64,000 bases of DNA from positions 62,001-126,000 of IMG/VR virus record IMGVR_UViG_3300029983_000007. One strand, written 5' to 3'. Numbering within the stretch: position 1 is the stretch's first letter; every line of letters begins with the position of its first letter. The position numbers and the translations under genes were made by a program. This document shows positions 1 to 54,687 of this stretch, piece after piece. The notes beneath the pieces are model-generated. The model saw nothing but the letters and a program-made list of their open reading frames with translations, was not told the origin of the DNA and ran no database searches.

Positions 1-108
1 ATCGAATAACATTTTTTTAACATCTTCAGCGCATTTAGGTTCCATTGGAAAAATAACTACAAAGCTACTTGATGATGAATTACCAACAAATCCCGTTCTA
101 ATTTTCAT
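1..108 (-). CDS. NSSSSS-leader family protein, N-terminal part (runs off window)
   Basis: Manual translation MKIRTGFVGNSSSSSFVVIFPMEPKCAEDVKKMLFD; not in ORF track. Confidence 0.85.
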   Translation of the reverse strand, partial: MKIRTGFVGNSSSSSFVVIFPMEPKCAEDVKKMLFD

Positions 109-291
109 ATTTTATCTTTTTTATCATTTAAATCTATTGTAATATCAGATTTTCTAAAAATTGCTTTAATTATTTATGTTATTATACCACCAGTAATAGA
201 AATTAATGAAATACAACCTACAAATATCCAAAATCCTGATGTTACATATTTTAAAAATTATAACATATAATTTTATTATTTTTTTTTTTTG

Positions 292-322
292 CAAATTTAC
301 TAAAATTATTTGATAATACAAA
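292..322 (-). promoter_or_regulatory. Bacteroidota-type primary-sigma promoter
   Basis: TTTG-N19-TAAATTTG on minus strand. Confidence 0.65.
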
Positions 323-989
323 AATTTATTGTCAAATAATTATTATGAATTTTTTTTATCTCACACAATTTATCTTTTCTTTTGTATACAGGATTACACA
401 CTAGGCATATAAGACCGTGTTTTTTTGTATTCCACATCATCTGATAATCACCTTTTTGTTTGCATTTAGGACATGATTCGTTACTTTCTGAACCTATAAC
501 TTGATAATCTAATGAATAATAATCATTATCAAAAGAATAAAATTCAGAGTCTCCATCAAGTAAACTGTTTATGCTATACCATCCATCGTCATTATCGTTA
601 TATTTTTGTAGTATAATTTTAAGTTCTGATTTAGCATCTTCTGATAATTTAGTATTATATTTCCATAAATCCCAATCTTCATTATTACATGTTGAAATTA
701 AATAGCAATCTGCAACTTTTTTTATATAAGTATCATAATTGCAACTTTGAAATGTTATTGCCTGATTCTCATCTAAATTTTGTAAAAAATTTAGATATTT
801 ATCGTGCTCATTTTTTCGATATTCATCCTGTTTTTTATCTCCACCTCCATAATCTCCATAATCTCCATATTCATCATATTTTCTATTAATCATATATGTA
901 GCAAGTTCACGTACACTTTTAAAATTCTTATCTGATATTATAAAACTACTTGATGATGAATTACTAACAAATCCAGTTCTTATTTTCAT
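306..989 (-). CDS. NSSSSS-leader family protein with C-terminal Zn ribbon and RxxKL tail
   Basis: MKIRTGFVSNSSSSSF; CPKC...CLVC; KRKDKLCEI. Confidence 0.85.
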   Translation of the reverse strand: MKIRTGFVSNSSSSSFIISDKNFKSVRELATYMINRKYDEYGDYGDYGGGDKKQDEYRKNEHDKYLNFLQNLDENQAITFQSCNYDTYIKKVADCYLISTCNNEDWDLWKYNTKLSEDAKSELKIILQKYNDNDDGWYSINSLLDGDSEFYSFDNDYYSLDYQVIGSESNESCPKCKQKGDYQMMWNTKKHGLICLVCNPVYKRKDKLCEIKKIHNNYLTINFCIIK

Positions 990-1008
990 TTTCTATTATT
1001 TTCTATTA

Positions 1009-1311
1009 TTAACAATATGTCGTACCAGTTATCAATTCAACTTCACTAATATCAACATTTAATGTGTCTGCTACTAATTTAGATTTTTCTATTATATCTG
1101 ATATCGATGTTGCACTATCACTTAACTCTTCACTTCTTGATATTATATAACCAACAATATATTCGTAATTACTATTTTCAACATTAATTACTTCAATATT
1201 ATTGTCAAATCCTTGTTCAATTTCATCTGTAGTGCAATTTGCTCTTTTGATACCAATTACCACAAAGCTACTTGAACTTGAATTACTCACAAATCCTTTT
1301 CTTATTTTCAT
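1009..1311 (-). CDS. NSSSSS-leader family protein
   Basis: MKIRKGFVSNSSSSSF. Confidence 0.85.
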   Translation of the reverse strand: MKIRKGFVSNSSSSSFVVIGIKRANCTTDEIEQGFDNNIEVINVENSNYEYIVGYIISRSEELSDSATSISDIIEKSKLVADTLNVDISEVELITGTTYC

Positions 1312-1324
1312 ATTTTCTTATTTT

Positions 1325-1786
1325 TTATCCATTTCTACCTGCGCCAAAATAAACTTCTGATTTATTTAAGTCTAACCCTGATTTTTCACTATAAAAAGCA
1401 TTATAAACTTTTTTGTCATTATTCTCAAAGAATGACATATCAATATCATAATCAATATCATCATAATCAGATGTCATAAAATCTGAATCACCTTCATTAT
1501 TGCATATATTAACAACTAAAAATAAATCTTCATCTTTACAATCTTTAGTATCTAACGAAGCATTTGTTTGAAATGACTCTACATAAATTTTATTATTGTT
1601 AAAATGTATATCATAATTACCGCTTTCTTTAATATTAGATAACGTTAATACTTTAACATAATAATCCAATTTAATATTATTATCTTTTGTGTATTGTGTA
1701 AATTCGTTGTAATCATTAATCTTGGCTATACCAACAATAAAACTACTTGATGATGAATTACTTACGAAACCATTTCTTATTTTCAT
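1325..1786 (-). CDS. NSSSSS-leader family protein (start corrected to ATG 1786)
   Basis: MKIRNGFVSNSSSSSF begins at 1786; track extension overlaps the upstream gene. Confidence 0.85.
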   Translation of the reverse strand: MKIRNGFVSNSSSSSFIVGIAKINDYNEFTQYTKDNNIKLDYYVKVLTLSNIKESGNYDIHFNNNKIYVESFQTNASLDTKDCKDEDLFLVVNICNNEGDSDFMTSDYDDIDYDIDMSFFENNDKKVYNAFYSEKSGLDLNKSEVYFGAGRNG

Positions 1787-1799
1787 ATTCTTATTTTTT

Positions 1800-2390
1800 T
1801 TACAATAAATGTGGTCTTGCTTCAGCAATTCCAGCATTTGTTACTTGATACCATTTTGGATTGTATTCAGATAGATTGTTAGCTCCTCCATAAGATAATG
1901 CTGAACGAACTCCATAAATTAATCCTTCTATTACAAATCTTACTCCACCTTTGAATGGTATAGTTGTTGACTCTCCTTCTACATTTCTCTCAGCTTGACC
2001 ATGAACAGTTTTAGTTTCCAATGATGCAGAGCCTCTATAGCGTTTATATAAACCATTAGGACTCTCTATAACCTTACCTGGTGATTCTTCTGTTCCTGCT
2101 AATAGAGAACCTAACATGATTGTTGATGATCCTAATGCAAGAGCTTTAGAAATATCTCCACTTGATCTAATTCCACCATCAGCCATAACTGGTACTGTTG
2201 CTACATTTAAAATTTCTATTAAACTTGTCACATTTGGAACACCAAATCCTGTCTTAATCCTTGTTGTACAAAGAGAATTATGAACAACAATACCATTTAT
2301 ATTATACGAATGTGTTTTTTCTACTGTTAAATCATAAACTTTGCCTGTATAATTCTTTTTCTCAATGCTTTTTATTTCTACTAATTTCAT
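1800..2390 (-). CDS. Split intein C-half fused to C-terminal extein of GuaB/GuaC-family (IMPDH/GMP reductase) enzyme
   Basis: VYDLTVEKTHSYNINGIVVHN|SLCTTRIKTGFG; then ADGGI, KALALG, MLGSLLAGTEESPG, YRGSAS. Confidence 0.92.
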   Translation of the reverse strand: MKLVEIKSIEKKNYTGKVYDLTVEKTHSYNINGIVVHNSLCTTRIKTGFGVPNVTSLIEILNVATVPVMADGGIRSSGDISKALALGSSTIMLGSLLAGTEESPGKVIESPNGLYKRYRGSASLETKTVHGQAERNVEGESTTIPFKGGVRFVIEGLIYGVRSALSYGGANNLSEYNPKWYQVTNAGIAEARPHLL

Positions 2391-2512
2391 ATTATATCTT
2401 TTAATTTTTTAATAAAACTTCCATCATTTATCTCATTCTCCCAAATTCTAATTAATTTAAAATTGTGTTCTAATGCAAATTTATTTTTCTTTATATCTTT
2501 TTCAAATTTCAA
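2387..2512 (-). pseudogene. Internally deleted Vsr-like homing endonuclease relic between intein halves
   Basis: 41-aa frame LKFEKDIKKNKFALEHNFKLIRIWENEINDGSFIKKLKDII; overlaps IntN stop and IntC ATG. Confidence 0.7.
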
Positions 2513-3371
2513 CTAAAAAATATTTATCAGTTAAATTTCCTGCTGGTATCCATTCAGCATACTCTTCAATATTTGATGAGTTAACTAAACCTTTATATTT
2601 TATATTTACAACATAAAATTCATGATTTTTTGTGCATTCTATGCCATTTATAATAATAATTTCCTCATTTCTATCAAACTCTAATTTATTTAATACTTTA
2701 TTGAGTTCTCCATTATGACTATAAACTTCATCTCCAATTTTTACATCAATTATATCAATATATCCTTCTGAAGTTTTAACTTTCATGCTAGGTGTAAAAC
2801 AGCCTCCACCAATACCACATCTTAGTCCATCAGCTCCCCAATTTTGTAAATCAATAGCTGCTTCTGATGTAGCAATATTACCTGCAATTATATCCACTCC
2901 TAAATCTAATCCTTTAATTGCTTCGATTGCTTTTTTTACATTTATGTGATGACCATGTGCAACATCAATAAGAATAACATTTACTCCTGCTTCAATTAAT
3001 GATTTGGATCTTTCTAAAAAATCTCCGTTTGAACCTACTGCTGCCATTACTGGAATTTTGTGCCTTATTTTATCTTGATTGAAAGGATCATATGAACTAT
3101 TCTCAATACTTGTAATTAATTTTTTAATTTCATTTGCCTGTTCTTCAATAGACATAAATCTATGAATACATCCTACTCCTCCTAATTGAAACATTTTAAA
3201 TGCCATTTCATGTTCACAAACTGTGTCCATGGGTGATGCTACTAATGGTATCATCAACTCAAAATTTGTCGATAATTTTGTTCTTAAACTAATTTTATTT
3301 CTATGTTTAACTTCACTGTAAAATGGTATGAGTTGAATATCATCATACGTTAACGCTATGTTATTTGTCAT
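2502..3371 (-). CDS. N-terminal extein of GuaB/GuaC-family enzyme fused to split intein N-half
   Basis: LTYDDI, SPMDTV, GGVGCIHR, IDVAHGH, AGNIAT, GIGGG|CFTPSMKV...CTKNHEFYV. Confidence 0.92.
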   Translation of the reverse strand: MTNNIALTYDDIQLIPFYSEVKHRNKISLRTKLSTNFELMIPLVASPMDTVCEHEMAFKMFQLGGVGCIHRFMSIEEQANEIKKLITSIENSSYDPFNQDKIRHKIPVMAAVGSNGDFLERSKSLIEAGVNVILIDVAHGHHINVKKAIEAIKGLDLGVDIIAGNIATSEAAIDLQNWGADGLRCGIGGGCFTPSMKVKTSEGYIDIIDVKIGDEVYSHNGELNKVLNKLEFDRNEEIIIINGIECTKNHEFYVVNIKYKGLVNSSNIEEYAEWIPAGNLTDKYFLVEI

Positions 3372-3390
3372 TCTTTATTTTATTTGTTTT

Positions 3391-3846
3391 TTATTTGTTT
3401 TTTGGTAGTAATAATAACTTTAGATATCTACTATTCAAATCAACACTATTGTTCATGTGTGATAATAATATTGGATGTAATTTATAACTTAAATCTGAAT
3501 CAGATATTACATCAAAGTCACCAATGAATTTTTTAAAGTTTTTCATTACACTTTTACTATCACGTATGTCAGAATTTAATATGAAATTTAGAATATTTAG
3601 AATTTCATATTCATCATTATCAATTTTCCACATTTTACAATATTCTGACCAAAAATCAGCACTATAATCTATTCTTTGTGACCTATATTTATTTTTAACT
3701 TCACTTATAAATTCATTTTTACCCAATTTATTAAAAAAAGATGTAGTCTTTTCTATTAAATAATCAGGTGATGTAGTTATAATTTTATTATCATTTAACA
3801 TAATTCCAAGATAATAAAATACATTATATGCTTGATTTTTAGTCAT
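3391..3846 (-). CDS. hypothetical protein
   Basis: 151 aa ORF in operon-like run. Confidence 0.6.
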   Translation of the reverse strand: MTKNQAYNVFYYLGIMLNDNKIITTSPDYLIEKTTSFFNKLGKNEFISEVKNKYRSQRIDYSADFWSEYCKMWKIDNDEYEILNILNFILNSDIRDSKSVMKNFKKFIGDFDVISDSDLSYKLHPILLSHMNNSVDLNSRYLKLLLLPKNK

Positions 3847-3852
3847 AATTTT

Positions 3853-4245
3853 TTAATAGTTATCGTTACTTACCATTTGAATATATGTGTTAATTACTCC
3901 TGTGATACCATATTTTTCAAATTTTTTACGTAATTCTTCTTCTTGTTCTGATGTACGATCTTTAAATTCAATCACTTCTCCGTCATCTAATCTTCCTAAT
4001 GATTCTCCTACTATAAGAGTATTATAGTCTTTTTCTCCAAAATAATTACCATCTACTTCAACACTAAAATCATTGTCAATTTTATTTGAAAAAAATTCAA
4101 ATTTATCATAATCATCTTCAATGTTATCAAATTCTTCGTCTTTAATGTTTAAGAATTTTGCTAACTCATAAATAGTAAGTTTAATTCCTCTTACAACGAA
4201 AGAAGAACTACTTGAATTGCTTACAAATCCACTTCTAATTTTCAT
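3853..4245 (-). CDS. NSSSSS-leader family protein
   Basis: MKIRSGFVSNSSSSSF. Confidence 0.85.
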   Translation of the reverse strand: MKIRSGFVSNSSSSSFVVRGIKLTIYELAKFLNIKDEEFDNIEDDYDKFEFFSNKIDNDFSVEVDGNYFGEKDYNTLIVGESLGRLDDGEVIEFKDRTSEQEEELRKKFEKYGITGVINTYIQMVSNDNY

Positions 4246-4262
4246 ACTTTTTAATTTATTTT

Positions 4263-4703
4263 TTAATAATTTCCTCCACTTTGTATGTGAATGACATCAT
4301 TGTTTACATTTATTCCTGTTTCACACAAATATCCTTCTAATCCGTCTCCAGAATCATCTGATGCAGAGCCTTCATAATAACGATATTCTTTATTTAATAT
4401 TTTCACTAAATCTTCTCTTGGTATGTGAGGATATCCTTGATCAATTATTTCATCTATCATTTCGTCATCTGATAATTTATTACCTGAATCACAATAATTT
4501 TCAAATATATCTTTAATGCTCATTTCTTTAAGATTTCTAATCATCCAATCTGATAGTCCATTTGCAAAGTCAAATAATATTGAATTTTCATTCAAATCAA
4601 ACAACTTCATAAGAGTATCTTTTGATAATTCTTTTTCATTTTTTACAGTAACAATGAAAGAACTACTACTGCTATTACTAACAAATCCATTTCTTAATTT
4701 CAT
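4263..4703 (-). CDS. NSSSSS-leader family protein
   Basis: MKLRNGFVSNSSSSSF. Confidence 0.85.
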   Translation of the reverse strand: MKLRNGFVSNSSSSSFIVTVKNEKELSKDTLMKLFDLNENSILFDFANGLSDWMIRNLKEMSIKDIFENYCDSGNKLSDDEMIDEIIDQGYPHIPREDLVKILNKEYRYYEGSASDDSGDGLEGYLCETGINVNNDVIHIQSGGNY

Positions 4704-5059
4704 GATTTTTTATTTAATAGTTCTGTTATTTTTTTACTATCAGCGACAACAATTTGACCGTCATCTGGTCCACCTTCTACAGTTGCTATTACATATGCAC
4801 TAATTACATCATTTAAATTATCAAAAAAATCATATTCATGATTTTTATCATACTTTTTTGAATAATCATATATTTCTTCATTGTAGAAACCCCCGTCATC
4901 AACTAGCCTTTTTAACAATTCTTTAAATCCATCTAATGGAAAATCTTCATATTCATCAGTGATCTTTTTATAGTCAACAATATCAAGAAAATTCTCAGGT
5001 AATAGAATTACAAAAGACGAGCTACTTGAGTTGCTAACAAATCCTTTTCTTATTTTCAT
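4700..5059 (-). CDS. NSSSSS-leader family protein
   Basis: MKIRKGFVSNSSSSSF. Confidence 0.85.
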   Translation of the reverse strand: MKIRKGFVSNSSSSSFVILLPENFLDIVDYKKITDEYEDFPLDGFKELLKRLVDDGGFYNEEIYDYSKKYDKNHEYDFFDNLNDVISAYVIATVEGGPDDGQIVVADSKKITELLNKKS

Positions 5060-5098: not shown

Positions 5099-5740
5099 TT
5101 AGTTTATTAATCTATCTATTCCGATAGCAAATCCAACTCCACCATCATATTCTCCTCCACCACAAATTTGTTTAGATGAACCTAATTTTTCGCAAGTTAT
5201 TTCAAATCCCTTACCATCTTTATAATAATCAAGTCCTCTTCTAACATCGTTATTGACAACATAATCATCAACATTAGTATTGAAATTGTTTGTTAATAAT
5301 TTCATTGCTAAATGTTGCAAGTTTGCTCCATCAGAAAGATAATCATGAGATGGATTTAAAATTTCAACTCCAAGTTGAGTGAATTGCCTATATCTTCCCG
5401 ACTGTGGTTTTTCCCCACGAAAGCATTCACAAACATAGAACAATAATACATCATTTTCATTTTTGTATGTTGTTTTAGATAGTTTTTGCGCTATTGCAGT
5501 ATATTCAGGAGCTAAACACAAATATCTATCTCCTCTATCTTTGAAATTGTACATCATGTTGTTATTTTCTTCTCCTACCTTATCTTTGAATAATTCTTGA
5601 AATTGTATAATAGGAATTTGTATTTCTTCAAAATGATATTCATCAATTAATATTTTAATCATTGAATTTATCAATTCTCTTTTTTCATTACCAACTAAAA
5701 TCCTAGTTCCTTTGTAACAAGTTTCTTTTATTATTTTCAT
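5099..5740 (-). CDS. Histidyl-tRNA synthetase-like catalytic core lacking anticodon-binding domain
   Basis: MYNFKDRG, LAPEYT, FRGEKPQSGRYRQFTQLGVE (motif 2), RGLDYY, GGGEY...GFAIGIDRL (motif 3); only 213 aa. Confidence 0.85.
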   Translation of the reverse strand: MKIIKETCYKGTRILVGNEKRELINSMIKILIDEYHFEEIQIPIIQFQELFKDKVGEENNNMMYNFKDRGDRYLCLAPEYTAIAQKLSKTTYKNENDVLLFYVCECFRGEKPQSGRYRQFTQLGVEILNPSHDYLSDGANLQHLAMKLLTNNFNTNVDDYVVNNDVRRGLDYYKDGKGFEITCEKLGSSKQICGGGEYDGGVGFAIGIDRLIN

Positions 5741-6624
5741 TTATCAATCTCACTCCATTCTTTAAGTAAATTACCATATTTCCAACATTGTACAAGTATT
5801 GATCTAGCTGCATAATACATTGACCCTGATATTCCTAAAAAATCCATTTCAAATGATGTTTTGCTCGCTACTTCTTTAAGTAAATCTAAATCAATTTCTT
5901 TGTTTTTTGATATTGCTTCTGACTGCATTAATTTAGCCCATCCTTCAGCATATTCAAATATACAATTACCATAAGAGTCAGTATTATTGGACTTCCAATC
6001 TTCCCAAGATTTTTCATCTAATAGTTCAATACTAATTCCTTTTATTTTTTCTTTATATTTTCTTTTTGTTTCAACTTCTTTTTTATGTTCTTCAATTCTT
6101 CTTTTTATTGATTCCTCTTCAGATTTTTTTAATTTTTTCTCATAATCATTTTTAGTTTTATCATCATATTCATCATCACATATCGGACCAATTTTAGTCC
6201 ATTTCATAAAATGAGCATCATTATAATACTTATGTAAATTATTGAGATTTGTGTTTTTGTCAATTAAACAAATGATACCATTAAAATCAAAGCTACAAAT
6301 TAAATTGTTTGCAATAGAAAACTTTTTTGCTTCTTTTGAAGTGTAATCAAAATCATATCCTAGCATAACTTGCATTCTCACTCCTGAAGTAGAATTACTA
6401 AGAATTTCTAAAATTTTTTCTTCTTCACTATTGATGATTAAGTTATTAAGAACTTTTAATTTCAATTTTCTATCAATATCATTATTAACACAGAATGTTA
6501 TATACTCTCCATATTCACATTCATAATAACTTGAAAAATTTATATTATTTGATATAAGATATTTAATTAAAATATAATTTTTATCTTTTTTATCTTTTAT
6601 TGTATATGTGAAATATTTATTCAT
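5737..6624 (-). CDS. hypothetical protein; N-domain related to 6912..7355
   Basis: Internal RKLKLKVL...EEKIL shared with neighbour. Confidence 0.7.
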   Translation of the reverse strand: MNKYFTYTIKDKKDKNYILIKYLISNNINFSSYYECEYGEYITFCVNNDIDRKLKLKVLNNLIINSEEEKILEILSNSTSGVRMQVMLGYDFDYTSKEAKKFSIANNLICSFDFNGIICLIDKNTNLNNLHKYYNDAHFMKWTKIGPICDDEYDDKTKNDYEKKLKKSEEESIKRRIEEHKKEVETKRKYKEKIKGISIELLDEKSWEDWKSNNTDSYGNCIFEYAEGWAKLMQSEAISKNKEIDLDLLKEVASKTSFEMDFLGISGSMYYAARSILVQCWKYGNLLKEWSEIDK

Positions 6625-9070: not shown

Positions 9071-9934
9071 ATGGATTATTTAAAAATATATAAAAAATTG
9101 ATAACAAATGCAATAGAAAGGACAATTTCTGATAATGAAGTATATGAAAAACATCATATAATATCAAAATGTATATTCAATGATAACTATTCTATATCAG
9201 TATTTAATGATTATTATAAATTAGTCAAATCAAAATATAGTCTTAGTAATGTAGTTAAATTAACACTAAGAGAGCATTATATTTCACATTTATTGTTGGT
9301 TAGAATTTTTGAAAAAAATAAAAATTGTCATTTTAAATTATTATGTGCTGCAAATTTTTTGACCAACAGAACAAAAAATAATAGGGAATATGAATGGCAA
9401 AAGAAAGAATACATTGAGAAATTAAAAATATCTATGACTGGAAAGCCAAGTAGAGCAAAAGGAAAAAAATGGTCAGAAGAATCAAAGAAAAATAAATCAG
9501 GCACAAATCATTATATGTATAATAAAAATTATGATGAACTTTATGGATTAGAAAAATCTCAAGAGTTGAAAGAAAATAGAAGAAATTCACAATTAGGTAG
9601 AATAAAATCAACTGAAGAAAAAAATAAATTATCTAACAGAATATTCACAGAAGAATGGAAAAATAATATATCAAAAAATAAAAAAGGTAAAAAACTATCA
9701 GAAACAAATAAAGATAATATTAAGAAGTTTATGTTAAATCCAGATTTGAACCCGAATGTGGATCAGACATTATATAAATTTTACCATATAGATGGCAGGG
9801 AAATTATATCAAGAAAAATTGAAATGAAAAAAAATTATAATTGTACAGACATACACAAAATAATAAGCGGTATTAGAAAAATTTCTAAAGGATGGAGGTA
9901 TAAAGGAGAAATAATAAAAAAAAGTGATGAATAA
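9071..9934 (+). CDS. Free-standing HNH homing endonuclease with NUMOD3-like repeats
   Basis: YEKHHII...NVVKLTLREHYISHLLL; KGKKWSEESK and KGKKLSETNK repeats. Confidence 0.8.
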   Translation: MDYLKIYKKLITNAIERTISDNEVYEKHHIISKCIFNDNYSISVFNDYYKLVKSKYSLSNVVKLTLREHYISHLLLVRIFEKNKNCHFKLLCAANFLTNRTKNNREYEWQKKEYIEKLKISMTGKPSRAKGKKWSEESKKNKSGTNHYMYNKNYDELYGLEKSQELKENRRNSQLGRIKSTEEKNKLSNRIFTEEWKNNISKNKKGKKLSETNKDNIKKFMLNPDLNPNVDQTLYKFYHIDGREIISRKIEMKKNYNCTDIHKIISGIRKISKGWRYKGEIIKKSDE

Positions 9935-9951
9935 TCATCACTTTTTAATTT

Positions 9952-11031
9952 TTAAATTTTATATAGAGGACAATCACGATTACAACGAATAAGGTTATTT
10001 CTAAAATTAATAGTCTTTTCGTTATTCCAAATATCATCAATAAAATTACCACATTTTAAAACATTTAGTCCTTCTTTCCAATTTTCTGTATTTGGAGTAA
10101 ATGAGCAAGGAAAATAATTTCCTTTGACATCAATATAGCTACTATAACAACTTGACTCACATGGCTCTACACATTGCTTCATTTTGTTTCTGTATTCATC
10201 TGATAATGAGTTATCTGATTCCAAATATTTTAGAAATTTGTGACTACTGCAACTATCAAATCCTATACTTATTTTTTCATCTAATGCAAATTTGCAAAGT
10301 TCATTAAACTTATCCTGTGGTAAAGGGTGAAATCTATTTTCTGCTCTACCTTTAGTTTTTAAACTTAGTAAAACTAATGCGTTAAGATTTTTTAATCTTT
10401 CATCATTTTTACAATCTTTAATTACTTGCATTGTATAGTCAAAATTTTCCAAGCAAATCATATCGTGAATGTTTACTTGTGTCATTCCTCTATCAGTTAA
10501 TTCTTTTATTGCGTTGTAACTATTGTCTTTATTATAAGATGTACCAACTGATACAGCAACTGCTCCCATTGTTTTTGATAATCTATCATACAATTCTGAT
10601 GTCATTCGTGATCCATTTATTGTTACATTAGGAACAACATCTTGAGAGCGAGTATAATCAAAAATATCCCACATATCTGGATTTGAATCAATGTCTGTTA
10701 TTCCAAATGCTACCTGAGTTACAGTTAAAGGAAGCTTAGAAAAAATGTTTTTATATGTGTCTAATGACATATATTCACCATCTTTATTGTTGCTCTTGTA
10801 GCAAAATGAACAGTTTTGTTTACACGCTGTGTCAATTTCAATATCAGCAATTTCAGGTAATCCTATTTCTAAATCACCATCATCATCTTCTGTTTTACCC
10901 CATCTGGCAAAAAACCCTGTTTTTTTGTTAAATAAGAAATTGTAGTTTTCTGATTTTAAAATTTTAACATCTTTATTATCTACAATTAGTGCTTCTTCAC
11001 CGTTTGAAAGTTTTAATTTAGTTTGTTTCAT
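9952..11031 (-). CDS. Radical SAM enzyme with SPASM/twitch-like C-terminal domain
   Basis: CKQNCSFC (CX3CX2C); C-terminal CES...YIDVKGNYFPCSF...CNRDCP. Confidence 0.9.
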   Translation of the reverse strand: MKQTKLKLSNGEEALIVDNKDVKILKSENYNFLFNKKTGFFARWGKTEDDDGDLEIGLPEIADIEIDTACKQNCSFCYKSNNKDGEYMSLDTYKNIFSKLPLTVTQVAFGITDIDSNPDMWDIFDYTRSQDVVPNVTINGSRMTSELYDRLSKTMGAVAVSVGTSYNKDNSYNAIKELTDRGMTQVNIHDMICLENFDYTMQVIKDCKNDERLKNLNALVLLSLKTKGRAENRFHPLPQDKFNELCKFALDEKISIGFDSCSSHKFLKYLESDNSLSDEYRNKMKQCVEPCESSCYSSYIDVKGNYFPCSFTPNTENWKEGLNVLKCGNFIDDIWNNEKTINFRNNLIRCNRDCPLYKI

Positions 11032-20867: not shown

Positions 20868-22742
20868 TTATTTTATTTCCTCAAAATCCACGTCTGTTAC
20901 ATTTTCAGAATCATCTTTTTTGTCAGATGAATTGCTTTCATTCGTTGACTGATTTTTTGATTCTTCATAAAGTTTACCACTAATGTTTTGCCAAACATCA
21001 TTAAGTTCTTTGGTGTATTTATCAATATTATCAACATTTTGAGTTTTGTGAGCTTCTTTAAGATTATCAAGTTTAGAATTCAATTCAGTTTTGTTTTCTT
21101 CATTCAATTTATCACCAAATTCTTCAATTTGTTTTTCAGTTTGAAAAATCATTGAGTCAGCTTGATTCAACTTATCAACTTTTTCTTTTTCTTTCTTATC
21201 AGCATCAGAATTTTGTTCAGCTTCCATTTTCATTCTTTCAATCTCTTCTTTTGTTAGAGATGAATTACCTTCAATCCTAATGTCATTCTTTTTTCCTGTT
21301 GCTTTATCAACTGCAGTAACTGTCAAAATATTATTTGCATCAATTGAAAACGAAATTTCTATTTGCGGTACTCCTCGTCTGGCTGGCATAATTCCATCTA
21401 AATTAAAAGTTCCCAACATTTTATTATCCTTAAACATACTTCTATTTCCAGTTGAAACATTAATCTGAACACCAGGCTGATTGTCAGTGGCTGTACTGAA
21501 TATTTGTGTCTTAGTTGTAGGAATTGTTGTATTAGCCTCTACCATGACACTGGCTACACCGCCCATACTCTCCAGTGAGAAGTTTAAAGCTGTAACATCG
21601 AGTAATAAGATGTCAGTTGTATCACCAGCAAGAACAGATGCTTGTATAGCTGCACCTGATGCAATTGCAGTATCAGGATTAAGTGACTTATTCGCTTTCT
21701 TACCAAAATATTTTTCAATACTTTCTGACAAATATGGAATTCTAGTGCTACCTCCAACAAGTACAATTTCGTCAATATCTGAAACTTTCTTACCACTTTT
21801 ATTCATTGATGATTGAATCAATGATATTGTTTTATCAACATAGAATTGAATCAATTGTTCAAATTTAGATCTTGTTAATTTTTGAACCAAATGTTTAGGT
21901 TGTCCATCTACAGCAGTGATGTATGGTAAATTTATTTCTGTTTGTGTAGTATTAGACAATTCTATTTTTGCTTTTTCTGATGCTTCTGTAACACGTTGTA
22001 GAGCCATTGGATCTTTACGAATATCAACGCCTGTTTCTTTTAAAAATTCATCAGATATAAAATTCACAAGTGCGTCATCAATTAAATTACCACCTAAATC
22101 TAAATCACCATCAGTTCCAATAACTTCAAATAATCCGTCCTCTATATCTAAAACTGAAAAATCACTTGTACACCCACCACTATCAACTATCATATAAAGT
22201 TTACCAGTTTTATCTTTAATATTTAATGATGCTGCTGTTGGTTCAGATATAATTCTATCAACAGTAAATCCTGCTATTTCACCTGCAACTTTTGTACTGC
22301 TTCTTTCATCTGAATTGAAATATGCTGGAGTTGTTATGACCGCATTGGTTACATTTGTTCCAAGGTAATCTTCTGCTGTTTTTTTCATTTTTTGAAGGAT
22401 CATTGCAGAAATTTCTTCTGGTGAATATATTCTTTCACCAATTTTTACACCAGCCTTACCATTATTATCAACTATATCATAAGGACGTTTAAGATGTTTA
22501 ACTTCCTCATAAGTTCTACCAATAAGTCTTTTGATATTAAAAATTGTGTTTTTTGGATTTAATGCTGCTTGTCTTTTTGCAGATTCACCAACTTTAATTT
22601 CTCCTGTTTTTTCATCAAATGATACAATTGAAGGAGTTGATAGCGATCCTTCTGAATTAGGTATGACAATTGTTTGTCCACCTTCTACTATAGATACGGC
22701 TGAATTGTATGAACCTAAATCTATTCCAATAATTTTTCCCAT
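20868..22742 (-). CDS. dnaK: Hsp70 chaperone DnaK
   Basis: IIGIDLG, TPAYF, LVGGSTRIP, GVPQIEISF, C-terminal DVDFEEIK. Confidence 0.97.
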   Translation of the reverse strand: MGKIIGIDLGSYNSAVSIVEGGQTIVIPNSEGSLSTPSIVSFDEKTGEIKVGESAKRQAALNPKNTIFNIKRLIGRTYEEVKHLKRPYDIVDNNGKAGVKIGERIYSPEEISAMILQKMKKTAEDYLGTNVTNAVITTPAYFNSDERSSTKVAGEIAGFTVDRIISEPTAASLNIKDKTGKLYMIVDSGGCTSDFSVLDIEDGLFEVIGTDGDLDLGGNLIDDALVNFISDEFLKETGVDIRKDPMALQRVTEASEKAKIELSNTTQTEINLPYITAVDGQPKHLVQKLTRSKFEQLIQFYVDKTISLIQSSMNKSGKKVSDIDEIVLVGGSTRIPYLSESIEKYFGKKANKSLNPDTAIASGAAIQASVLAGDTTDILLLDVTALNFSLESMGGVASVMVEANTTIPTTKTQIFSTATDNQPGVQINVSTGNRSMFKDNKMLGTFNLDGIMPARRGVPQIEISFSIDANNILTVTAVDKATGKKNDIRIEGNSSLTKEEIERMKMEAEQNSDADKKEKEKVDKLNQADSMIFQTEKQIEEFGDKLNEENKTELNSKLDNLKEAHKTQNVDNIDKYTKELNDVWQNISGKLYEESKNQSTNESNSSDKKDDSENVTDVDFEEIK

Positions 22743-23655: not shown

Positions 23656-24528
23656 TTAAAACTTTTTCATTTTTTGGTAAGAAATTTCATTTCTTTCGTT
23701 ACTACGTTGCTTATCTTTCTTTTTTTGTTCTTTCTTGTCCTTCCAAGATGTACCTTCAGATTTATCTTTGATATTTAAGATTGGTTTGATTTTATCAAGA
23801 ATCAAAGCAGTAGGTCCAATTGCTTTTTCAATCATTTCAGAGTTTTTGTAAGCAAATGGTGATTCATCAATTGTACTTTTACATACAGAAGTTGAATATA
23901 TACCTTTCATTACTCTCTGAAAGTCTTTTAAATCAACTGACTCTTTTGCTTTTGATCTTGACATCAAACGACCAGAACCATGTGGAGCTGAGTTATTCCA
24001 ATCTTCATTTGATTTACCTTCACATATAAGTATTCCATCTCTCATATTGAATGGTATAATCATTTTTTCTCCAACATATGAAGATATAGCACCTTTTCTT
24101 ATGATAAAGTCTTTGAAATCCACATAGTTATGTATTGAATGAATTTCTTCATCAAATTTTTTGATATTCAATGCTTTTTTTATCAAAGACAACATAGTTT
24201 TTCTGCTCCATAGAGCATATTGTTGAGCAAAAATCATATCAAATAGATAACCAATAAGATATTCTCCGTCTAAATATTCTTTGCCAATATTAAGACTGTA
24301 TCTTGTTCTCAATTCTTTTATTTTTTTATCAATATCAGATTTTGGATAAGTATTCATAGTAATGTCATCCAATTCCATGTTATATTCTTTGGTTGCAACA
24401 AATACTTTACCATTTGCTACTTTAGTCCAGTGTTCAGCTATTTTCAAACCAAAGTTTCTTGAGCCAGAGTGAACTGTTACCCAATAATCATTAGTCTTAT
24501 CTGACTTACCAAGTTCAATAAAGTGATT
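23656..24528 (-). CDS. rtcB: RtcB RNA ligase, 3' exon
   Basis: NHFIE, VHSGSRNFG, HNY, RKGA, SAPHGSGR, IDESPFAYK. Confidence 0.93.
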   Translation of the reverse strand, partial: NHFIELGKSDKTNDYWVTVHSGSRNFGLKIAEHWTKVANGKVFVATKEYNMELDDITMNTYPKSDIDKKIKELRTRYSLNIGKEYLDGEYLIGYLFDMIFAQQYALWSRKTMLSLIKKALNIKKFDEEIHSIHNYVDFKDFIIRKGAISSYVGEKMIIPFNMRDGILICEGKSNEDWNNSAPHGSGRLMSRSKAKESVDLKDFQRVMKGIYSTSVCKSTIDESPFAYKNSEMIEKAIGPTALILDKIKPILNIKDKSEGTSWKDKKEQKKKDKQRSNERNEISYQKMKKF

Positions 24529-25622
24529 CAATTTTGTTACTATTATTTTAATTTCAATCTAAATAACCTCATTTTTATAGATTGCTTTGTTCTTTTAAGA
24601 TTTTCTATTGATTCAGATATATCATTATTTATAATATAATTATCTTCATAGTCTGTCCATATTTTACGTTCAAAATCTATTTTTTTGATATTAATTGGTC
24701 TTTCCCAATTTAATATTTTTTGAGCAGAATCATATTTTCTATTTATACTCATACAATCTTTATAATATAATATTTCAATTATTTTTTGAGAATTTTCATT
24801 CATCACCATTATATTATATAAGTTATCTCTTTTATTTTTATTTGTTATTTTTTTATATCCAATAATGTTAGATAAAAAAACAACAAATTGTTCAGCAAGT
24901 TTACTAGAACATGTAACTAAAGATATGAAAGGTAATCCTTTTTTTGTAAATCCTAATGATCCATCGCCATCTATAACTCCTCTCCAGTAATCAATTTCTA
25001 TTATATTATCTGGTTTCTGAATTGTGTGTGATTTTTTACCAACAGGTAAATACTTTTTAAATTCATTTCTTGTTTCTAATTCAAATATTTTTAATGCTGA
25101 TGTATTTGAAATATATTTGTATTCTTTAATATTAATATTTCTTGTTCTTTCAGTTATTGAAACATTACAATTAAGAATAGATTTTATATATTTTAATATA
25201 TTATCATCACTTTTATTTATTTCAAGTGTGATTCTTCCTCTATTTCTAGTTGATTCGTATAAATTACCATCAGTTTGTAATAAACCTATAATGTATGCAT
25301 GTTTCTTATTTAAAATGTCTATTTTCATAATGTGTTTTTATTTGTATATATAATTTCACTTTATTGAAAATTTACATTTCATTGAAATTGTAATAACGAG
25401 ATAGACATTTCTGCTATCTTCAATATCTTCTTATTAAATATTGTTCAGAATGTACCTTTTACCTTTGTGTATTACAGTGAGATAAAACAAGTCCCTCCAT
25501 TCGTTACAGGGTGTTATCTAAAATGACAGAGCACTTCCCTCGGTATTAGCATCACAGCCGTCCACCGATTTGGACGATTTTAACTACTATTAGCTATTAA
25601 CTAATACGGTGGCAATCAATTC
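24529..25622 (-). mobile_element. Group I intron in rtcB carrying a LAGLIDADG endonuclease
   Basis: Interrupts GGG|NHF; exon GGTGGT pairs with IGS GCCACC (U.G at splice site); TGATT/AATCA P10; AAATCGGT/ATACCGAG P4; GAATG/CATTC P7; terminal G. Confidence 0.9.
24543..25328 (-). CDS. Intron-encoded double-motif LAGLIDADG homing endonuclease
   Basis: YIIGLLQTDGNL and YWRGVIDGDGSL; own late-type promoter at 25345-25353. Confidence 0.9.
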   Translation of the reverse strand: MKIDILNKKHAYIIGLLQTDGNLYESTRNRGRITLEINKSDDNILKYIKSILNCNVSITERTRNINIKEYKYISNTSALKIFELETRNEFKKYLPVGKKSHTIQKPDNIIEIDYWRGVIDGDGSLGFTKKGLPFISLVTCSSKLAEQFVVFLSNIIGYKKITNKNKRDNLYNIMVMNENSQKIIEILYYKDCMSINRKYDSAQKILNWERPINIKKIDFERKIWTDYEDNYIINNDISESIENLKRTKQSIKMRLFRLKLK

Positions 25623-30410: not shown

Positions 30411-30623
30411 TGAATATATACAGAAAGAAGAATTGACTACATTAGGATTAGTTTGTCACTGAGTAAAGACAGTCAATAATAAATTTTATTATCACATTAT
30501 GAATATTGGTGATAGTAAAAAAATAGACATTTATGTTACACAGCAAGAACTTAATAATATTGAAGAATATATGAAAAATTATTATAAAGAAATTAGATTA
30601 AAAAATTAAAAAAATTAAAATGA
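30388..30623 (+). pseudogene. Disrupted RxxKL-tail gene
   Basis: MGILEID...VCH*VKT... in-frame TGA, plus a missing A in the IRLKKLKKLK tail. Confidence 0.5.
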
Positions 30624-30937
30624 AAAAAATTAAAAAAATAATAATTTTTTTAAATAAGTCATTTAATCCATATTATGAATTAAATAAACAGGCAAAAACA
30701 ATTGAAAATATATATGAAAAACTTATATCAAGTCAATTAGATAGTAGACTGAATGAACTTGAAAGACTTAGAAATATGAGTGAAGAAGATATAAAAAATG
30801 AGAAAGAAAAAATCTTAAATATAGAGGCAACTAAAATATTAACTCAGTTAGAATGTAATCCAGAATTATATAGAGTATTTAATAATATATTAAGAATAAA
30901 TAAATTTAAAAAAATAGAAGATAGTAAAAATGAGTAA
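30620..30937 (+). CDS. RxxK-tail protein
   Basis: ends ILRINKFKKIEDSKNE. Confidence 0.6.
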   Translation: MKKIKKIIIFLNKSFNPYYELNKQAKTIENIYEKLISSQLDSRLNELERLRNMSEEDIKNEKEKILNIEATKILTQLECNPELYRVFNNILRINKFKKIEDSKNE

Positions 30938-42850: not shown

Positions 42851-44191
42851 ATGGCTAAAAAAGAAAAAAGTGATAAAATATTTGTACTTGATACAAGTGT
42901 AATACTTTATGATCACAATGCAATTTACAATTTTGAAGAAAATGATGTTGCAATTCCTATTACAGTATTCGAAGAATTAGATGATTTCAAAAAGGGTAAT
43001 GACACAATTAATTATGAGGCAAGAGAATTTATTAGAAAAACAGATAAATTAGCATCTAAATGTAATTTGAGCGATTGGATTCCTATTGGTAAAGGAAAAG
43101 GTAGAGTTAAGGTTGTGATGAATGAAACAACTGGAACAACTGATGCTTGTTTAGTTTTTAAATCTACAAAGCCAGATCATTTAATTTTAAATACTGCGTT
43201 GTCATTGGTAGAAGAATATCCTGACAAAAAGATTATACTTGTATCAAAAGATATAAATTTAAGATTGAAAGCTAAATCTTTAAATGTTAATTCTGAAGAT
43301 TATTTAACAGGTAAAATTAAAGATACTGATAAATTATTTACAGGTAGATCAACAATTGAATTAGATACAGATGATATAATTACTAAACTATATCAAGATA
43401 ATGTTTGTACACCACAAGAACTTGGTATTACAGATTTATTAAATAATAAATATTTAATTATTAAATCATCTATTTCTGCTGCATCAGCTTTAGCATATTA
43501 TAATTCATCAAAACAGCAAGTGGAAAGAATAGATAAAGAAACATGTTATAAAATAACACCAAGAAATTCTGAACAAGTATTTGCGTTACATGCATTATTA
43601 AATCCTGATGTTAAATTAGTATCATTACAAGGAGTTGCAGGAACAGGAAAAACATTGTTAGCTTTGGCTGCTGCACTTAGTCAGAAGAGAAATTTTAAAC
43701 AAATATTTTTGGCGAGACCAATTGTGCCATTAAGTGGAAAAGACATAGGCTATCTTCCTGGCGATGTTGATCAGAAGACATCAGTGTACATGATGCCTCT
43801 GTTCGATAATCTAAAATTTATACAAAGTCAGTTTAAAGATACTGATAAGGAATATAAATTCATTCAAGATTGTATTAAAGACGAAAAAGTAATAATAACT
43901 CCTTTGACATATATTCGTGGACGTAGTATTTCAAATGTTTTTTTTATTGTTGACGAATCTCAGAACCTTACTCCTCATGAAATAAAAACTATTATAACAA
44001 GAGCAGGAGAAGGTACAAAGATTGTGTTCACTGGAGATATAAATCAGATCGACACACCTTATTTAGATGCTCAAAGTAATGGATTATCACATTTAATTGC
44101 TAAAATAAAAGGACAACCTATTTATTCTCATGTGACTCTTGAAAAAGGAGAACGTTCTGAATTAGCAAATATTGCAAATGAATTACTTTAA
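42851..44191 (+). CDS. phoH: PIN-PhoH (PhoH2/YlaK-like) protein
   Basis: N-terminal VLDTSV PIN domain; GVAGTGKT, YIRGRS, DESQN, GDINQID. Confidence 0.92.
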   Translation: MAKKEKSDKIFVLDTSVILYDHNAIYNFEENDVAIPITVFEELDDFKKGNDTINYEAREFIRKTDKLASKCNLSDWIPIGKGKGRVKVVMNETTGTTDACLVFKSTKPDHLILNTALSLVEEYPDKKIILVSKDINLRLKAKSLNVNSEDYLTGKIKDTDKLFTGRSTIELDTDDIITKLYQDNVCTPQELGITDLLNNKYLIIKSSISAASALAYYNSSKQQVERIDKETCYKITPRNSEQVFALHALLNPDVKLVSLQGVAGTGKTLLALAAALSQKRNFKQIFLARPIVPLSGKDIGYLPGDVDQKTSVYMMPLFDNLKFIQSQFKDTDKEYKFIQDCIKDEKVIITPLTYIRGRSISNVFFIVDESQNLTPHEIKTIITRAGEGTKIVFTGDINQIDTPYLDAQSNGLSHLIAKIKGQPIYSHVTLEKGERSELANIANELL

Positions 44192-48311: not shown

Positions 48312-48464
48312 ATGAAAAACAAATCAAAAATTTCGATATCATTAAAAAATGAATTGATAGATTATTTAAATGACTTGAGTTTAAATAAATCTAAATTTAT
48401 AGAAAAATTAATAGAAGAGTATAAAATAATAAAAATAAATAATGATAATAACAAAAAAAGTTAA
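48312..48464 (+). CDS. Small ribbon-helix-helix protein upstream of endonuclease
   Basis: MKNKSKISISLKNELIDYLNDLSLNKSKFIEKLIEEY; below track cut-off. Confidence 0.7.
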   Translation: MKNKSKISISLKNELIDYLNDLSLNKSKFIEKLIEEYKIIKINNDNNKKS

Positions 48465-49431
48465 AATTCATATTAAAGGAATATCAATAAAAAGATATAA
48501 AAAATTAGGTTATAATGTTGATACTAAAGGATTAAATACTATTAATGTTGAAGATCTTCCTAAATGTAGTAATATTAAAGTCATGGTGAAATGTGATAAT
48601 TGTGATTATGAAAAAGAATTAAAGATTCAAGATTATTATTTATCTTTTAAAAATAATAAATATTGTTGTAATAAATGCTCATATGAAAATTATAAAAAAA
48701 CAATGTTAGAAAGATATGGAGTTGAAAATGGATTTCAATATAAAGACATAAAAGAAAAATCTAATAGCACTAAAATAAAATTATATGGAGATGAAAATTA
48801 CAATAATAGAGAAAAAGCGATAGAAACATGTTTAGATAAATATGGTGTTGAAAATCCTAATCAAAATTATAAAATAAAAAAAAAATCTAATAATACTTGC
48901 TTAGAAAAATATGGATTTGAAACAGCATCTAAAAATGAAAAAGTAAAGGAAAAAATAAAAAAAACAAATTTGAAAAGATGGAACAGTACATGTACATTAC
49001 ATTCAGAAAAACAAATTGATAAAATTAAACAAATATTTATTGATAAATATGGAGTTGATAATCCTATGAAGAATTTAGAAATATTTTTAAAAGCCCAAAA
49101 AACAGCTCTAAATCGTAAAAAATTTAAAGAAACTGAATTATTATATCAAGGTACATATGAATTAGATTTTTTAAATAATTATTATGAAAAAATTAATATT
49201 GAAAATGGTAAATCAATAAAAATAATTTATAATAATAATAAAACTGTGTATCATTCTGATTTTTTTTTATCTGAAAAAAATTTAATTATAGAAATAAAAT
49301 CATCATATTGGTATAATAGATATTATGATAAAAATATAATTAAACAAAAAGAATGTGAAAAATTAGGATATAATTATATCATAATAATAGATAAAAATTA
49401 TAATGATTTTAATAAATTAATAATGATTTAA
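48442..49431 (+). CDS. Putative homing endonuclease: Zn-finger, KYGVEN repeats, PD-(D/E)XK nuclease
   Basis: CDNC/CNKC; several (K/R)YGV(E/D)N repeats; YHSDFFL...IIEIKS. Confidence 0.75.
   Translation: MIITKKVKIHIKGISIKRYKKLGYNVDTKGLNTINVEDLPKCSNIKVMVKCDNCDYEKELKIQDYYLSFKNNKYCCNKCSYENYKKTMLERYGVENGFQYKDIKEKSNSTKIKLYGDENYNNREKAIETCLDKYGVENPNQNYKIKKKSNNTCLEKYGFETASKNEKVKEKIKKTNLKRWNSTCTLHSEKQIDKIKQIFIDKYGVDNPMKNLEIFLKAQKTALNRKKFKETELLYQGTYELDFLNNYYEKINIENGKSIKIIYNNNKTVYHSDFFLSEKNLIIEIKSSYWYNRYYDKNIIKQKECEKLGYNYIIIIDKNYNDFNKLIMI

Positions 49432-51111: not shown

Positions 51112-54687
<3,576 letters not shown>

Follow-up and report, generated by a model that had tools for sequence, protein, structure and literature searches.

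A conserved N-terminal tag of variable phage proteins paired with a radical SAM enzyme

Radical SAM enzymes with SPASM or twitch domains, in which a C-terminal Cys-rich region binds two (SPASM, 7 Cys) or one (twitch) auxiliary clusters, mature peptides and proteins, and several of them are paired with precursor families, e.g., SkfB-SkfA, AlbA-SboA, MftC-MftA and PqqE-PqqA. In such RiPP or leader-peptide systems the precursor is short (typically under 100 aa), with a leader that is recognised and a separate core that is modified, and the cluster may carry an RRE (PqqD-like) domain, a leader protease or an exporter. The anaerobic sulfatase-maturating enzyme (anSME), on the other hand, is a radical SAM/SPASM enzyme that modifies a serine in a short conserved motif near the N-terminus of full-size proteins. 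A conserved N-terminus in front of variable bodies is also found in the internal proteins of phage T4, hypervariable proteins behind a capsid-targeting sequence of about 10 residues that ends in an L/I-x-E prohead-protease site. Here we describe a locus of a giant bacteriophage in which seven small proteins, most of them clearly acidic, share the same 16 N-terminal amino acids, and show that this tag is frequently encoded close to a radical SAM enzyme, which we propose as its maturase.

We have analysed a window of 64,000 nucleotides (positions 62,001 to 126,000 of the IMG/VR record IMGVR_UViG_3300029983_000007). A first-pass annotation made from the sequence alone had noticed seven otherwise unrelated proteins beginning with MK(I/L)RxGFV(S/G)NSSSSSF, and this observation proved to be real. 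All seven genes exist and are located on the minus strand, so that the positions given as their starts (108, 989, 1311, 1786, 4245, 4703, and 5059) are the highest coordinate of each gene. A degenerate DNA pattern for GFVxNSSSSSF found exactly these seven sites and nothing else in the 64 kb, against no match at all in 100 dinucleotide-preserving shuffles. Tag gene 1 (1..108) is cut by the window edge, with only its 36 N-terminal codons visible (MKIRTGFVGNSSSSSF...), and encodes 172 aa in the full contig. Tag gene 2 (306..989) encodes 227 aa and has a C-terminal CxxC...CxxC zinc-ribbon-like end, while tag gene 3 (1009..1311) encodes only 100 aa. Tag gene 4 (1325..1786, 153 aa) belongs to the most widely conserved tag family and is homologous over its full length to RB16p106 / the KP15-like 156-aa protein (hhalign 99%, 140 columns). 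Its ORF has an upstream in-frame ATG at 1837, but more than 100 homologues start at the tag Met and are about 153 aa long. The others are tag gene 5 (3853..4245, 130 aa), tag gene 6 (4263..4703, 146 aa) and tag gene 7 (4700..5059, 119 aa), the stop of the latter overlapping the start of gene 6. Five of the six complete proteins are acidic (pI 4.3 for tag gene 3, 4.4 for tag genes 4, 5, and 6, and 4.5 for tag gene 7), whereas the 227-aa protein is only mildly so (pI 5.5).

The claim that selection acts on the peptide and not on a DNA repeat also held. The 48-nt tag region has a mean pairwise nucleotide identity of 75%, 39% of the codon pairs encoding the same residue use different codons, and the serines switch between TCN and AGY. 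Likewise, the bodies do diverge almost completely: a MAFFT alignment had invariant columns only in residues 1-16, and the profile-profile alignment of two paralogue families stopped at column 20. Clustering by BLASTP of the bodies alone (69 components), jackhmmer, and hhalign among the 13 largest families detected no homology across families, with one pair reaching 59% probability. Pfam and NCBIfam scans of the six paralogues gave nothing above noise, a search of the PDB sequences with the profile of the 153-aa family gave only chance nanobody hits, and megablast of the first 12 kb found nothing. Neither did tblastn of the 153-aa paralogue against 50,697 phage records, probably because the serine run is masked.

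A single fold common to the bodies, with the motif as a mere structural strand or loop, had been named in advance as an outcome that would speak against a tag, and AlphaFold2 models of two of the proteins were examined. Both are confidently predicted (pLDDT 90 for the 153-aa protein and 85 for the 146-aa protein) but differ in secondary structure, one being beta-rich and the other, that of the 146-aa protein, mostly helical. In both, the beginning of the tag is predicted to be disordered (pLDDT below 50 for residues 1-10 and 1-11, respectively), whereas the second half (about S11 to V18) is predicted to be beta-strand 1 of the body, so that the motif is partly structural. Foldseek searches of both models against PDB, and of the 153-aa model against BFVD, found no match at E <= 0.001, the best being PII-like at E 0.03 and TM 0.3. 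A DNA-mimic or known anti-defence fold could therefore not be assigned.

A profile search with the tag, along the lines that the first-pass annotation had suggested, found 24,458 protein clusters at 50% identity. About 97% of the bodies are acidic, against 50% of the neighbouring proteins, and the C-terminal residue is enriched in Gly (21%). The median length in 230 relatives was 132 aa. Over 500 unique tags, R4 was found in 498, N10 in 499, S11 in 500, and S12 in 499, and conservation was also near-absolute at K2 and G6. Position 7 was F, H, Y, or W, while S13 and S14 tolerated T, A, or C. A scan of genome contigs returned only metagenome-assembled bins of very mixed taxonomy, most likely mis-binned viral contigs, and so gave no host inference.

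The main new result is a radical SAM enzyme of 359 aa encoded at 9952..11031, upstream of the tag genes and on the same strand. It has the C70-x3-C74-x2-C77 motif for the SAM-binding [4Fe-4S] cluster, followed by Y-K, and scores 31.1 bits against Pfam PF04055 (cut-off 29.5), which places it in the radical SAM superfamily; in relatives the first spacing of the motif varies from 3 to about 14 residues. The N-terminal ca. 45 aa are conserved (YNYxFNKxTGxFxRWG). Assignment to the SPASM/twitch subgroup is less secure, as the evidence pointed both ways: the window protein scores 20.0 bits against Pfam SPASM, just under the cut-off of 21.5, although 25 of 39 aligned proteins match (3 of the 39 were RNA ligases brought in by single linkage, which we removed), and only C261, C291, C309, and C354 are invariant across the 36 enzymes, enough for one cluster, while the window protein has 8 Cys in this region. 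The nearest NCBIfam models are MftC, SkfB, and the tungsten-cofactor maturase, and the only PDB sequence hit is SkfB, but these matches to characterised maturases are weak and far below the family cut-offs, so the substrate class of the enzyme is not proven. HisRS-like, Tad4-domain, and intein-split IMPDH genes lie between the tag genes and the enzyme, but they are not conserved with the module and we do not count them as parts of it.

The association between tag and enzyme was examined from both sides. Starting from the tag, in IMG/VR and MAG loci, a strict radical SAM profile hit 47 of 65 dereplicated locus groups within +-10 kb (49 before removal of the RNA ligases). It lies on the same strand in 47 of 48, the median gap is 582 bp, and the enzyme is upstream in 36. 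The remaining 18 of the 65 show no enzyme within 10 kb, including one with 11 tag genes. Starting from the enzyme, 75 of 80 loci carry tag genes and 5 show none; of the tag genes, 287 of 288 are on the strand of the enzyme, with a density that peaks 1-4 kb after its start. Three further ENA contigs of 180-400 kb show 3, 9, and 10 tag genes downstream, whereas random tag proteins retrieved by the representative search were on contigs too short (1-5 kb) to test linkage. The coupling appears specific, since no other non-tag family occurs in more than 7 of 65 or 9 of 69 locus groups, and no conserved small partner ORF flanks the enzyme. Among cultured T4-like phages (RB16, KP15 and relatives), the enzyme is present in 172 records and the RB16p106-like tag protein in 174, with the same genus distribution. 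However, in KP15/RB16-type phages the partners are about 20 kb apart, and a KP15-like genome has the enzyme plus two tag genes about 20 kb apart on one strand. Literature searches for the motif string and for phage radical SAM systems found nothing relevant, we found no description of the system in Pfam or NCBIfam, and the papers on KP15/KP27 and phiEap-3 do not mention the enzyme.

We believe that the best explanation for these data, which we hold with moderate confidence, is that the 16-18-residue N-terminus M-K-[ITV]-R-x-G-F-V-S-N-S-S-[ST]-[STA]-S-F-[IV]-[IV] is the docking and modification site of the co-encoded radical SAM enzyme, acting as a maturase of many variable proteins. What the analysis itself demonstrates is that tag and enzyme form a specific module of two gene families, in which one enzyme gene is usually followed on the same strand by 1-13 tag genes, conserved from T4-like enterobacterial phages to phages of more than 700 kb; that the tag is held constant at the peptide level while the bodies diverge beyond recognition; and that its first ca. 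10 residues are predicted flexible, and hence accessible, with the rest forming strand 1. The remainder is inference. In this view, the enzyme would bind the exposed N-terminal arm, cleave SAM to a 5'-deoxyadenosyl radical and abstract a hydrogen atom from one of the near-invariant residues, R4 and N10-S11-S12 being the most constrained and position 7 staying aromatic. The product might be a formylglycine-type aldehyde by oxidation of a serine C-beta, an aromatic-to-C-beta crosslink (F7 to S9/N10) or an epimerisation, and we cannot tell which. No modification has been observed, all the evidence being genomic association plus predicted structure, and residues 11-18, as a predicted buried core strand, would be inaccessible after folding. 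The biological role is unknown as well. The variable acidic bodies would be the working parts, probably early host-takeover or anti-defence proteins that diversify in an arms race, and the modified N-terminus would give all of them one shared property, such as stability, reactivity, or a handle. The numbers, 24,458 tag clusters at 50% identity against about 2,300 enzyme clusters at 90% identity, fit one enzyme serving many substrates.

The interpretation offered in the first-pass annotation was partly supported. Its core inference, a recognition or modification tag that sends a variable cargo set through one pathway, now has a concrete candidate enzyme that is co-located with tag genes across very divergent phages, and its statement that no function has been characterised still holds. 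The comparison with RiPP leaders fails in the size and predicted folding of the substrates and in the absence of accessory genes (see below), and the suggestion of an autoproteolytic N-S/S-S site was not supported. The latter, including pyruvoyl formation, has in its favour that Asn-Ser and Ser-Ser bonds are the chemistry used by intein C-terminal cleavage and by pyruvoyl enzymes, and that N10, S11, and S12 are the most invariant positions. However, self-processing needs a conserved surrounding fold that strains the bond, and here the bodies are unrelated and the preceding residues predicted disordered; it does not explain the linkage to the radical SAM enzyme either, and we regard it as very unlikely.

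Other alternatives appear unlikely but deserve consideration. The tag could be mainly a structural or assembly element of one very old, hyper-divergent superfamily, its second half being strand 1 of a small conserved core (strand 1, a central strand with an acidic loop, a helix, a C-terminal strand) and its first half an arm that pairs with another subunit or a common partner, with the radical SAM enzyme linked functionally, for example as partner or regulator, but not modifying the tag. Indeed, both models start their first strand inside the tag and have a late strand, a helix at about residues 122-130 and a C-terminal strand, several paralogues end in strand + G-x-N-Y/G, and the acidic bodies and C-terminal Gly would also fit. 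Yet no sequence or profile homology extends beyond residue 20, the two models differ, the predicted disorder of the invariant first 10 residues is unusual for a purely structural element, and a purely structural strand would not explain the near-absolute conservation of the tag or the specific coupling to a radical SAM gene. About as unlikely is a targeting signal, like the capsid-targeting sequence of the phage T4 internal proteins, that would send diverse proteins into the prohead, for co-injection with the DNA, or out of the cell. The system does occur in T4-like phages, and PHROG places the RB16p106-like protein in phrog_132 "head-tail adaptor", a label without Pfam or Foldseek support. 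However, there is no hydrophobic signal-peptide core and the conserved neighbour is a radical SAM enzyme, not a protease, portal, or secretion gene. Least likely of all is a prepilin-like leader (MK-x-R-x-G|F) cut by a host type IV prepilin peptidase: the six-residue basic leader ending in Gly followed by Phe resembles type IVa prepilins, but +5 is Ser instead of Glu, a polar serine run takes the place of the ca. 20-residue hydrophobic helix, the proteins are acidic, soluble, and predicted globular, and nothing would link them to the radical SAM enzyme.

If the enzyme does modify the tag, this would be one of the largest substrate families known for a single radical SAM maturase lineage, and a rare case of radical SAM maturation of whole folded proteins rather than peptides, in phages. 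It would provide a function-related handle to tens of thousands of phage ORFans, mark a class of probable host-takeover or anti-defence proteins by a simple sequence signature, and could reveal new enzyme chemistry on a 16-residue tag that might be portable for protein engineering. A more far-reaching possibility, which we put forward only tentatively as somewhat less likely than not, is a phage-wide, previously unrecognised protein-maturation system in which one radical SAM enzyme installs a new post-translational modification (a reactive aldehyde, crosslink, or D-residue cap) on the invariant N-terminus of an enormous, fast-evolving repertoire of acidic effectors, more than 24,000 clusters at 50% identity, in effect a shared chemical warhead or handle joined to a variable targeting body and used in host takeover or counter-defence. 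The reading is testable now, as the E. coli phages RB16/RB43 and Klebsiella phage KP15 carry both partners.

Compared with described families, the tag proteins and the enzyme are not new to databases: PHROG 7397 is the 171-aa KP15-type tag protein family (E 1e-115) and matches the tag of all six window paralogues, and PHROG 7293 is the enzyme (E 4e-82). Both are of unknown function, and neither the link between them nor the size of the tag superfamily is recorded there. The T4 internal proteins share the phage background and the hypervariable set of small proteins behind a short conserved N-terminus, but the sequence is different, the prohead-protease site is absent (no Glu in positions 1-18 of 500 tags, apart from E at position 14 in 2 of them), the bodies are acidic instead of basic, and the genes are linked to a radical SAM gene and lie in early/middle-type blocks; packaging in the head was not examined. 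In RB16 the tag gene lies in a block of small ORFs on the strand opposite the baseplate genes, and in KP15 the enzyme follows predicted middle promoters. Glycyl radical proteins carry an R-V-x-G-[FWY] glycine loop, usually C-terminal, and have a PflA-type activase, whereas the tag has R-x-G-F, one residue shorter and at the N-terminus, and the matches of the enzyme are SPASM-type maturases, not PflA or NrdG. The peptide maturases SkfB, AlbA, MftC, and PqqE resemble the present enzyme in having a radical SAM core with an auxiliary Fe-S Cys domain (with the reservation on the SPASM/twitch assignment given above) and in being encoded beside several genes whose products share a conserved N-terminal segment and vary elsewhere, and the best database matches of the enzyme are to these families. 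Here, however, the substrates are acidic proteins of 100-230 aa predicted to fold, the conserved segment is only 16-18 residues at the very N-terminus, and the system is phage-encoded with up to 13 substrates per enzyme. No RRE, leader protease, or exporter was found, there being no PqqD/RRE Pfam hit in the aligned enzymes, although a cryptic RRE in their conserved N-terminal ca. 45 aa cannot be excluded, and no other conserved neighbour family. As for anSME, the sulfatase motif (C/S)-x-(P/A)-x-R is absent from the tag, the bodies are not sulfatases, and the enzyme gave no anSME hit in NCBIfam, but in modifying full-size proteins it is the closest precedent for maturation at the level of the protein rather than the peptide.

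The window is AT-rich (22-33% GC in 2-kb windows, mostly ca. 25%) and densely packed with short genes, most of them on the minus strand. Among its products are a full-length Hsp70 (DnaK-like, 20868-22742), a 1191-aa collagen-repeat protein (51112-54687), a PIN-PhoH fusion (42851-44191), glycosyltransferases, a fragment of a family-B DNA polymerase (49471-50952) and several homing endonucleases. The polymerase fragment is 55% identical to an uncultured 735-kb phage record and is distantly related to the T4-type gp43, and proteins of the window were found on contigs of up to 711 kb. The window matches IMG/VR contig 3300029983_000007. It therefore comes from a huge phage related to the T4 superfamily. 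Homing or HNH endonuclease genes (9071-9934, plus strand; 48442-49431, plus strand; 24543-25328, minus strand) sit directly beside a radical SAM gene, the polymerase fragment and a C-terminal fragment of RtcB (23656-24531). Several genes of this phage look split or invaded by mobile elements.

Seven minus-strand genes begin with MK(I/L)RxGFV(S/G)NSSSSSF, and the observation made in the first-pass annotation thus holds. A degenerate DNA pattern for the motif hit exactly these seven places, with zero hits in 100 shuffled sequences, and no more tag genes lie in the ca. 8 kb beyond the window start. The 48-nt regions encoding the tag are only 75% identical on average and, of the codon pairs for identical residues, 39% differ, including TCN/AGY switches of serine. 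Conservation is therefore on the peptide. Five of the six complete proteins have a pI of 4.3-4.5, while the 227-aa one (306-989, minus strand) has a pI of 5.5. This last paralogue also carries a C-terminal CxxC...CxxC zinc-ribbon-like end (a weak YnfU-family hit), which indicates that some tag bodies include recognisable small modules.

At the sequence level the bodies behind the tag are unrelated. The alignment of the seven proteins has invariant columns only in residues 1-16. From 66 IMG/VR loci we extracted 230 unique tag proteins, and their bodies (residue 21 onward) fell into 69 BLASTP components. Comparison by hhalign among the 13 largest components gave probabilities below 5% for all but two pairs (59 and 16%), jackhmmer did not join them, and a profile-profile comparison of the 153-aa and 146-aa families aligned columns 1-20 and nothing more. 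Each paralogue is nonetheless a real conserved family. The 153-aa one has more than 100 full-length homologues at 28-93% identity, and is homologous over 140 columns to the 156-aa protein of cultured T4-like phages.

Two AlphaFold models are confident, with a pLDDT of 90 for the 153-aa protein and 85 for the 146-aa protein, but they differ, one being beta-rich and the other mostly helical. Neither matched anything in PDB, and the 153-aa model matched nothing in BFVD. In both models residues 1-10/11 have a pLDDT below 50 and the first strand starts inside the tag. Both also have a late strand, a helix near residues 122-130 and a C-terminal strand, and the C-termini across the family are enriched in Gly, so a small shared core cannot be excluded. 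The bodies share one clear property, namely that 97% are net acidic, against 50% of the neighbouring non-tag proteins.

When all the ORFs in the tag-seeded loci were clustered, one non-tag family was present in most of them, the homologue of the window gene at 9952-11031. This protein is a radical SAM enzyme. It has the motif C70-x3-C74-x2-C77 and a C-terminal Cys-rich domain that matches SPASM only weakly. Four C-terminal Cys are invariant across 36 aligned enzymes, suggesting at least one auxiliary cluster, and an N-terminal segment of ca. 45 residues is also conserved. Its nearest characterised relatives are peptide and cofactor maturases (MftC, SkfB and the tungsten-cofactor maturase, SkfB being the only PDB hit), although all the scores are far below the family cut-offs. 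In related loci (for example those designated L014, L035 and L066 in our set) the radical SAM gene is itself often in 2-3 pieces.

After removal of three mis-clustered RNA ligases, a strict profile found the enzyme in 47 of 65 dereplicated tag-seeded locus groups. It is on the same strand in 47 of 48, with a median gap of 582 bp, and it is upstream in 36. In the reverse direction, 75 of 80 enzyme-seeded IMG/VR loci contain tag genes, 287 of 288 of these genes being on the strand of the enzyme and concentrated 1-4 kb after its start. Three further enzyme-seeded ENA contigs (180-400 kb) have 3, 9, and 10 tag genes downstream. These loci are deeply diverged (enzyme identity 36-58%) and synteny is otherwise eroded. 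No other non-tag family appears in more than 7 of 65 or 9 of 69 groups, and the ORFs flanking the enzyme are not conserved. The module is therefore two-component, with one enzyme and a variable number of tagged proteins.

In the window, the enzyme lies 4.9 kb upstream of the nearest tag gene on the same strand. A homing endonuclease, a HisRS-like core, a Tad4-domain protein and an intein-split IMPDH have been inserted in between, none of which is conserved with the module. The HisRS-like protein (5099-5740, minus strand, 213 aa) consists only of a histidyl-tRNA-synthetase-like class II catalytic core, with no anticodon-binding domain. The 295-aa protein at 5737-6624 (minus strand) has a C-terminal Tad4 (Thoeris inhibitor) domain (Pfam E 3e-21). 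The IMPDH/GMP-reductase-like gene (1800-3371, minus strand) is interrupted by an intein and broken by stops, and reads as three pieces, i.e., 2502-3371 (N part plus intein start), 2387-2512 (41 aa) and 1800-2390 (intein end ...VVHNS plus C part).

A database search with a profile of the tag had been proposed beforehand as a way to probe the motif. Our 32-column profile found 24,458 representatives (clusters at 50% identity) at E <= 0.001 among 1.84 billion proteins. The tag is almost always at residue 1, lengths are mostly 80-130 aa, and 99% of the top 150 are acidic. Some database proteins (P0114-P0120 in our listing) contain the tag twice, with the second copy again preceded by Met, and may be fused neighbouring genes, tandem duplications or read-through of a stop. 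The enzyme family has about 2,300 clusters at 90% identity. Among one genome per prokaryotic species only metagenome bins matched, and the system looks viral.

The system also exists in cultured phages. The enzyme (40% identity, full length) is in 172 records (Slopekvirus KP15, Pseudotevenvirus RB16/RB43, Margaery, Cronobacter phages and others), and the 156-aa tag protein is in 174 records with the same genus distribution. A complete KP15-like genome has exactly two strong tag genes (MKIRSGFVSNSSSSSF...), about 19-23 kb from the enzyme and on the same strand. In KP15 the enzyme follows predicted middle promoters, and in RB16 the tag gene sits among small ORFs on the strand opposite the baseplate genes, which suggests pre-late expression. 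PHROG already holds the tag family (7397) and the enzyme (7293), both as "unknown function". It also assigns the tag protein at 30459-30926 of the KP15-like phage (sequence L163) and RB16p106 to phrog_132, "head-tail adaptor" (E 8e-10), a label copied by some GenBank records. However, there is no Pfam support for it and the gene lies in an early-type block. The label is probably wrong.

The constraint on individual residues was examined in 500 unique tags, collected with the profile rather than with a regular expression. The consensus residue was found in 490 of the 500 for K2, 498 for R4, 488 for G6, 487 for F7 (the rest being H, Y, W, or M), 474 for V8 (the rest I), 490 for S9, 499 for N10, 500 for S11, 499 for S12, 480 for S15 and 473 for F16 (25 are Y). 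Positions S13 and S14 accept T, A, or C. The chemical core is therefore likely N10-S12, with R4, G6 and the aromatic residue at position 7 as further determinants.

The best-supported reading is that the tag is the recognition and modification site of the radical SAM enzyme. What the analysis itself shows is that the two are linked, whereas the steps from linkage to modification are inferred, and the nature of the modification (serine oxidation, an aromatic-C-beta crosslink or epimerisation) is a guess from what this class of enzymes is known to do. The acidic, fast-diverging, early-type bodies suggest roles in host takeover or anti-defence, but no fold match supports a specific activity. The interpretation offered in the first-pass annotation, a recognition, modification or processing tag such as a RiPP-like leader or an autoproteolytic site, is partly supported. 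Self-processing ranks lower than modification by the enzyme, and so do the other alternatives considered, i.e., a structural or assembly arm of one divergent superfamily, a T4-like capsid-targeting or export signal, and a prepilin-like leader.

We found no paper containing the motif or describing a phage radical SAM system of this type, and no curated Pfam or NCBIfam family covers it. A radical SAM maturase acting together with tagged substrates is an arrangement already known, and what sets the present case, found also in the E. coli phages RB16/RB43, apart are its unusual substrates and its scale. In the reading that we favor, the logic resembles that of RiPP leaders and of sulfatase maturation by anSME, but it is applied to many unrelated, folded, acidic phage proteins.
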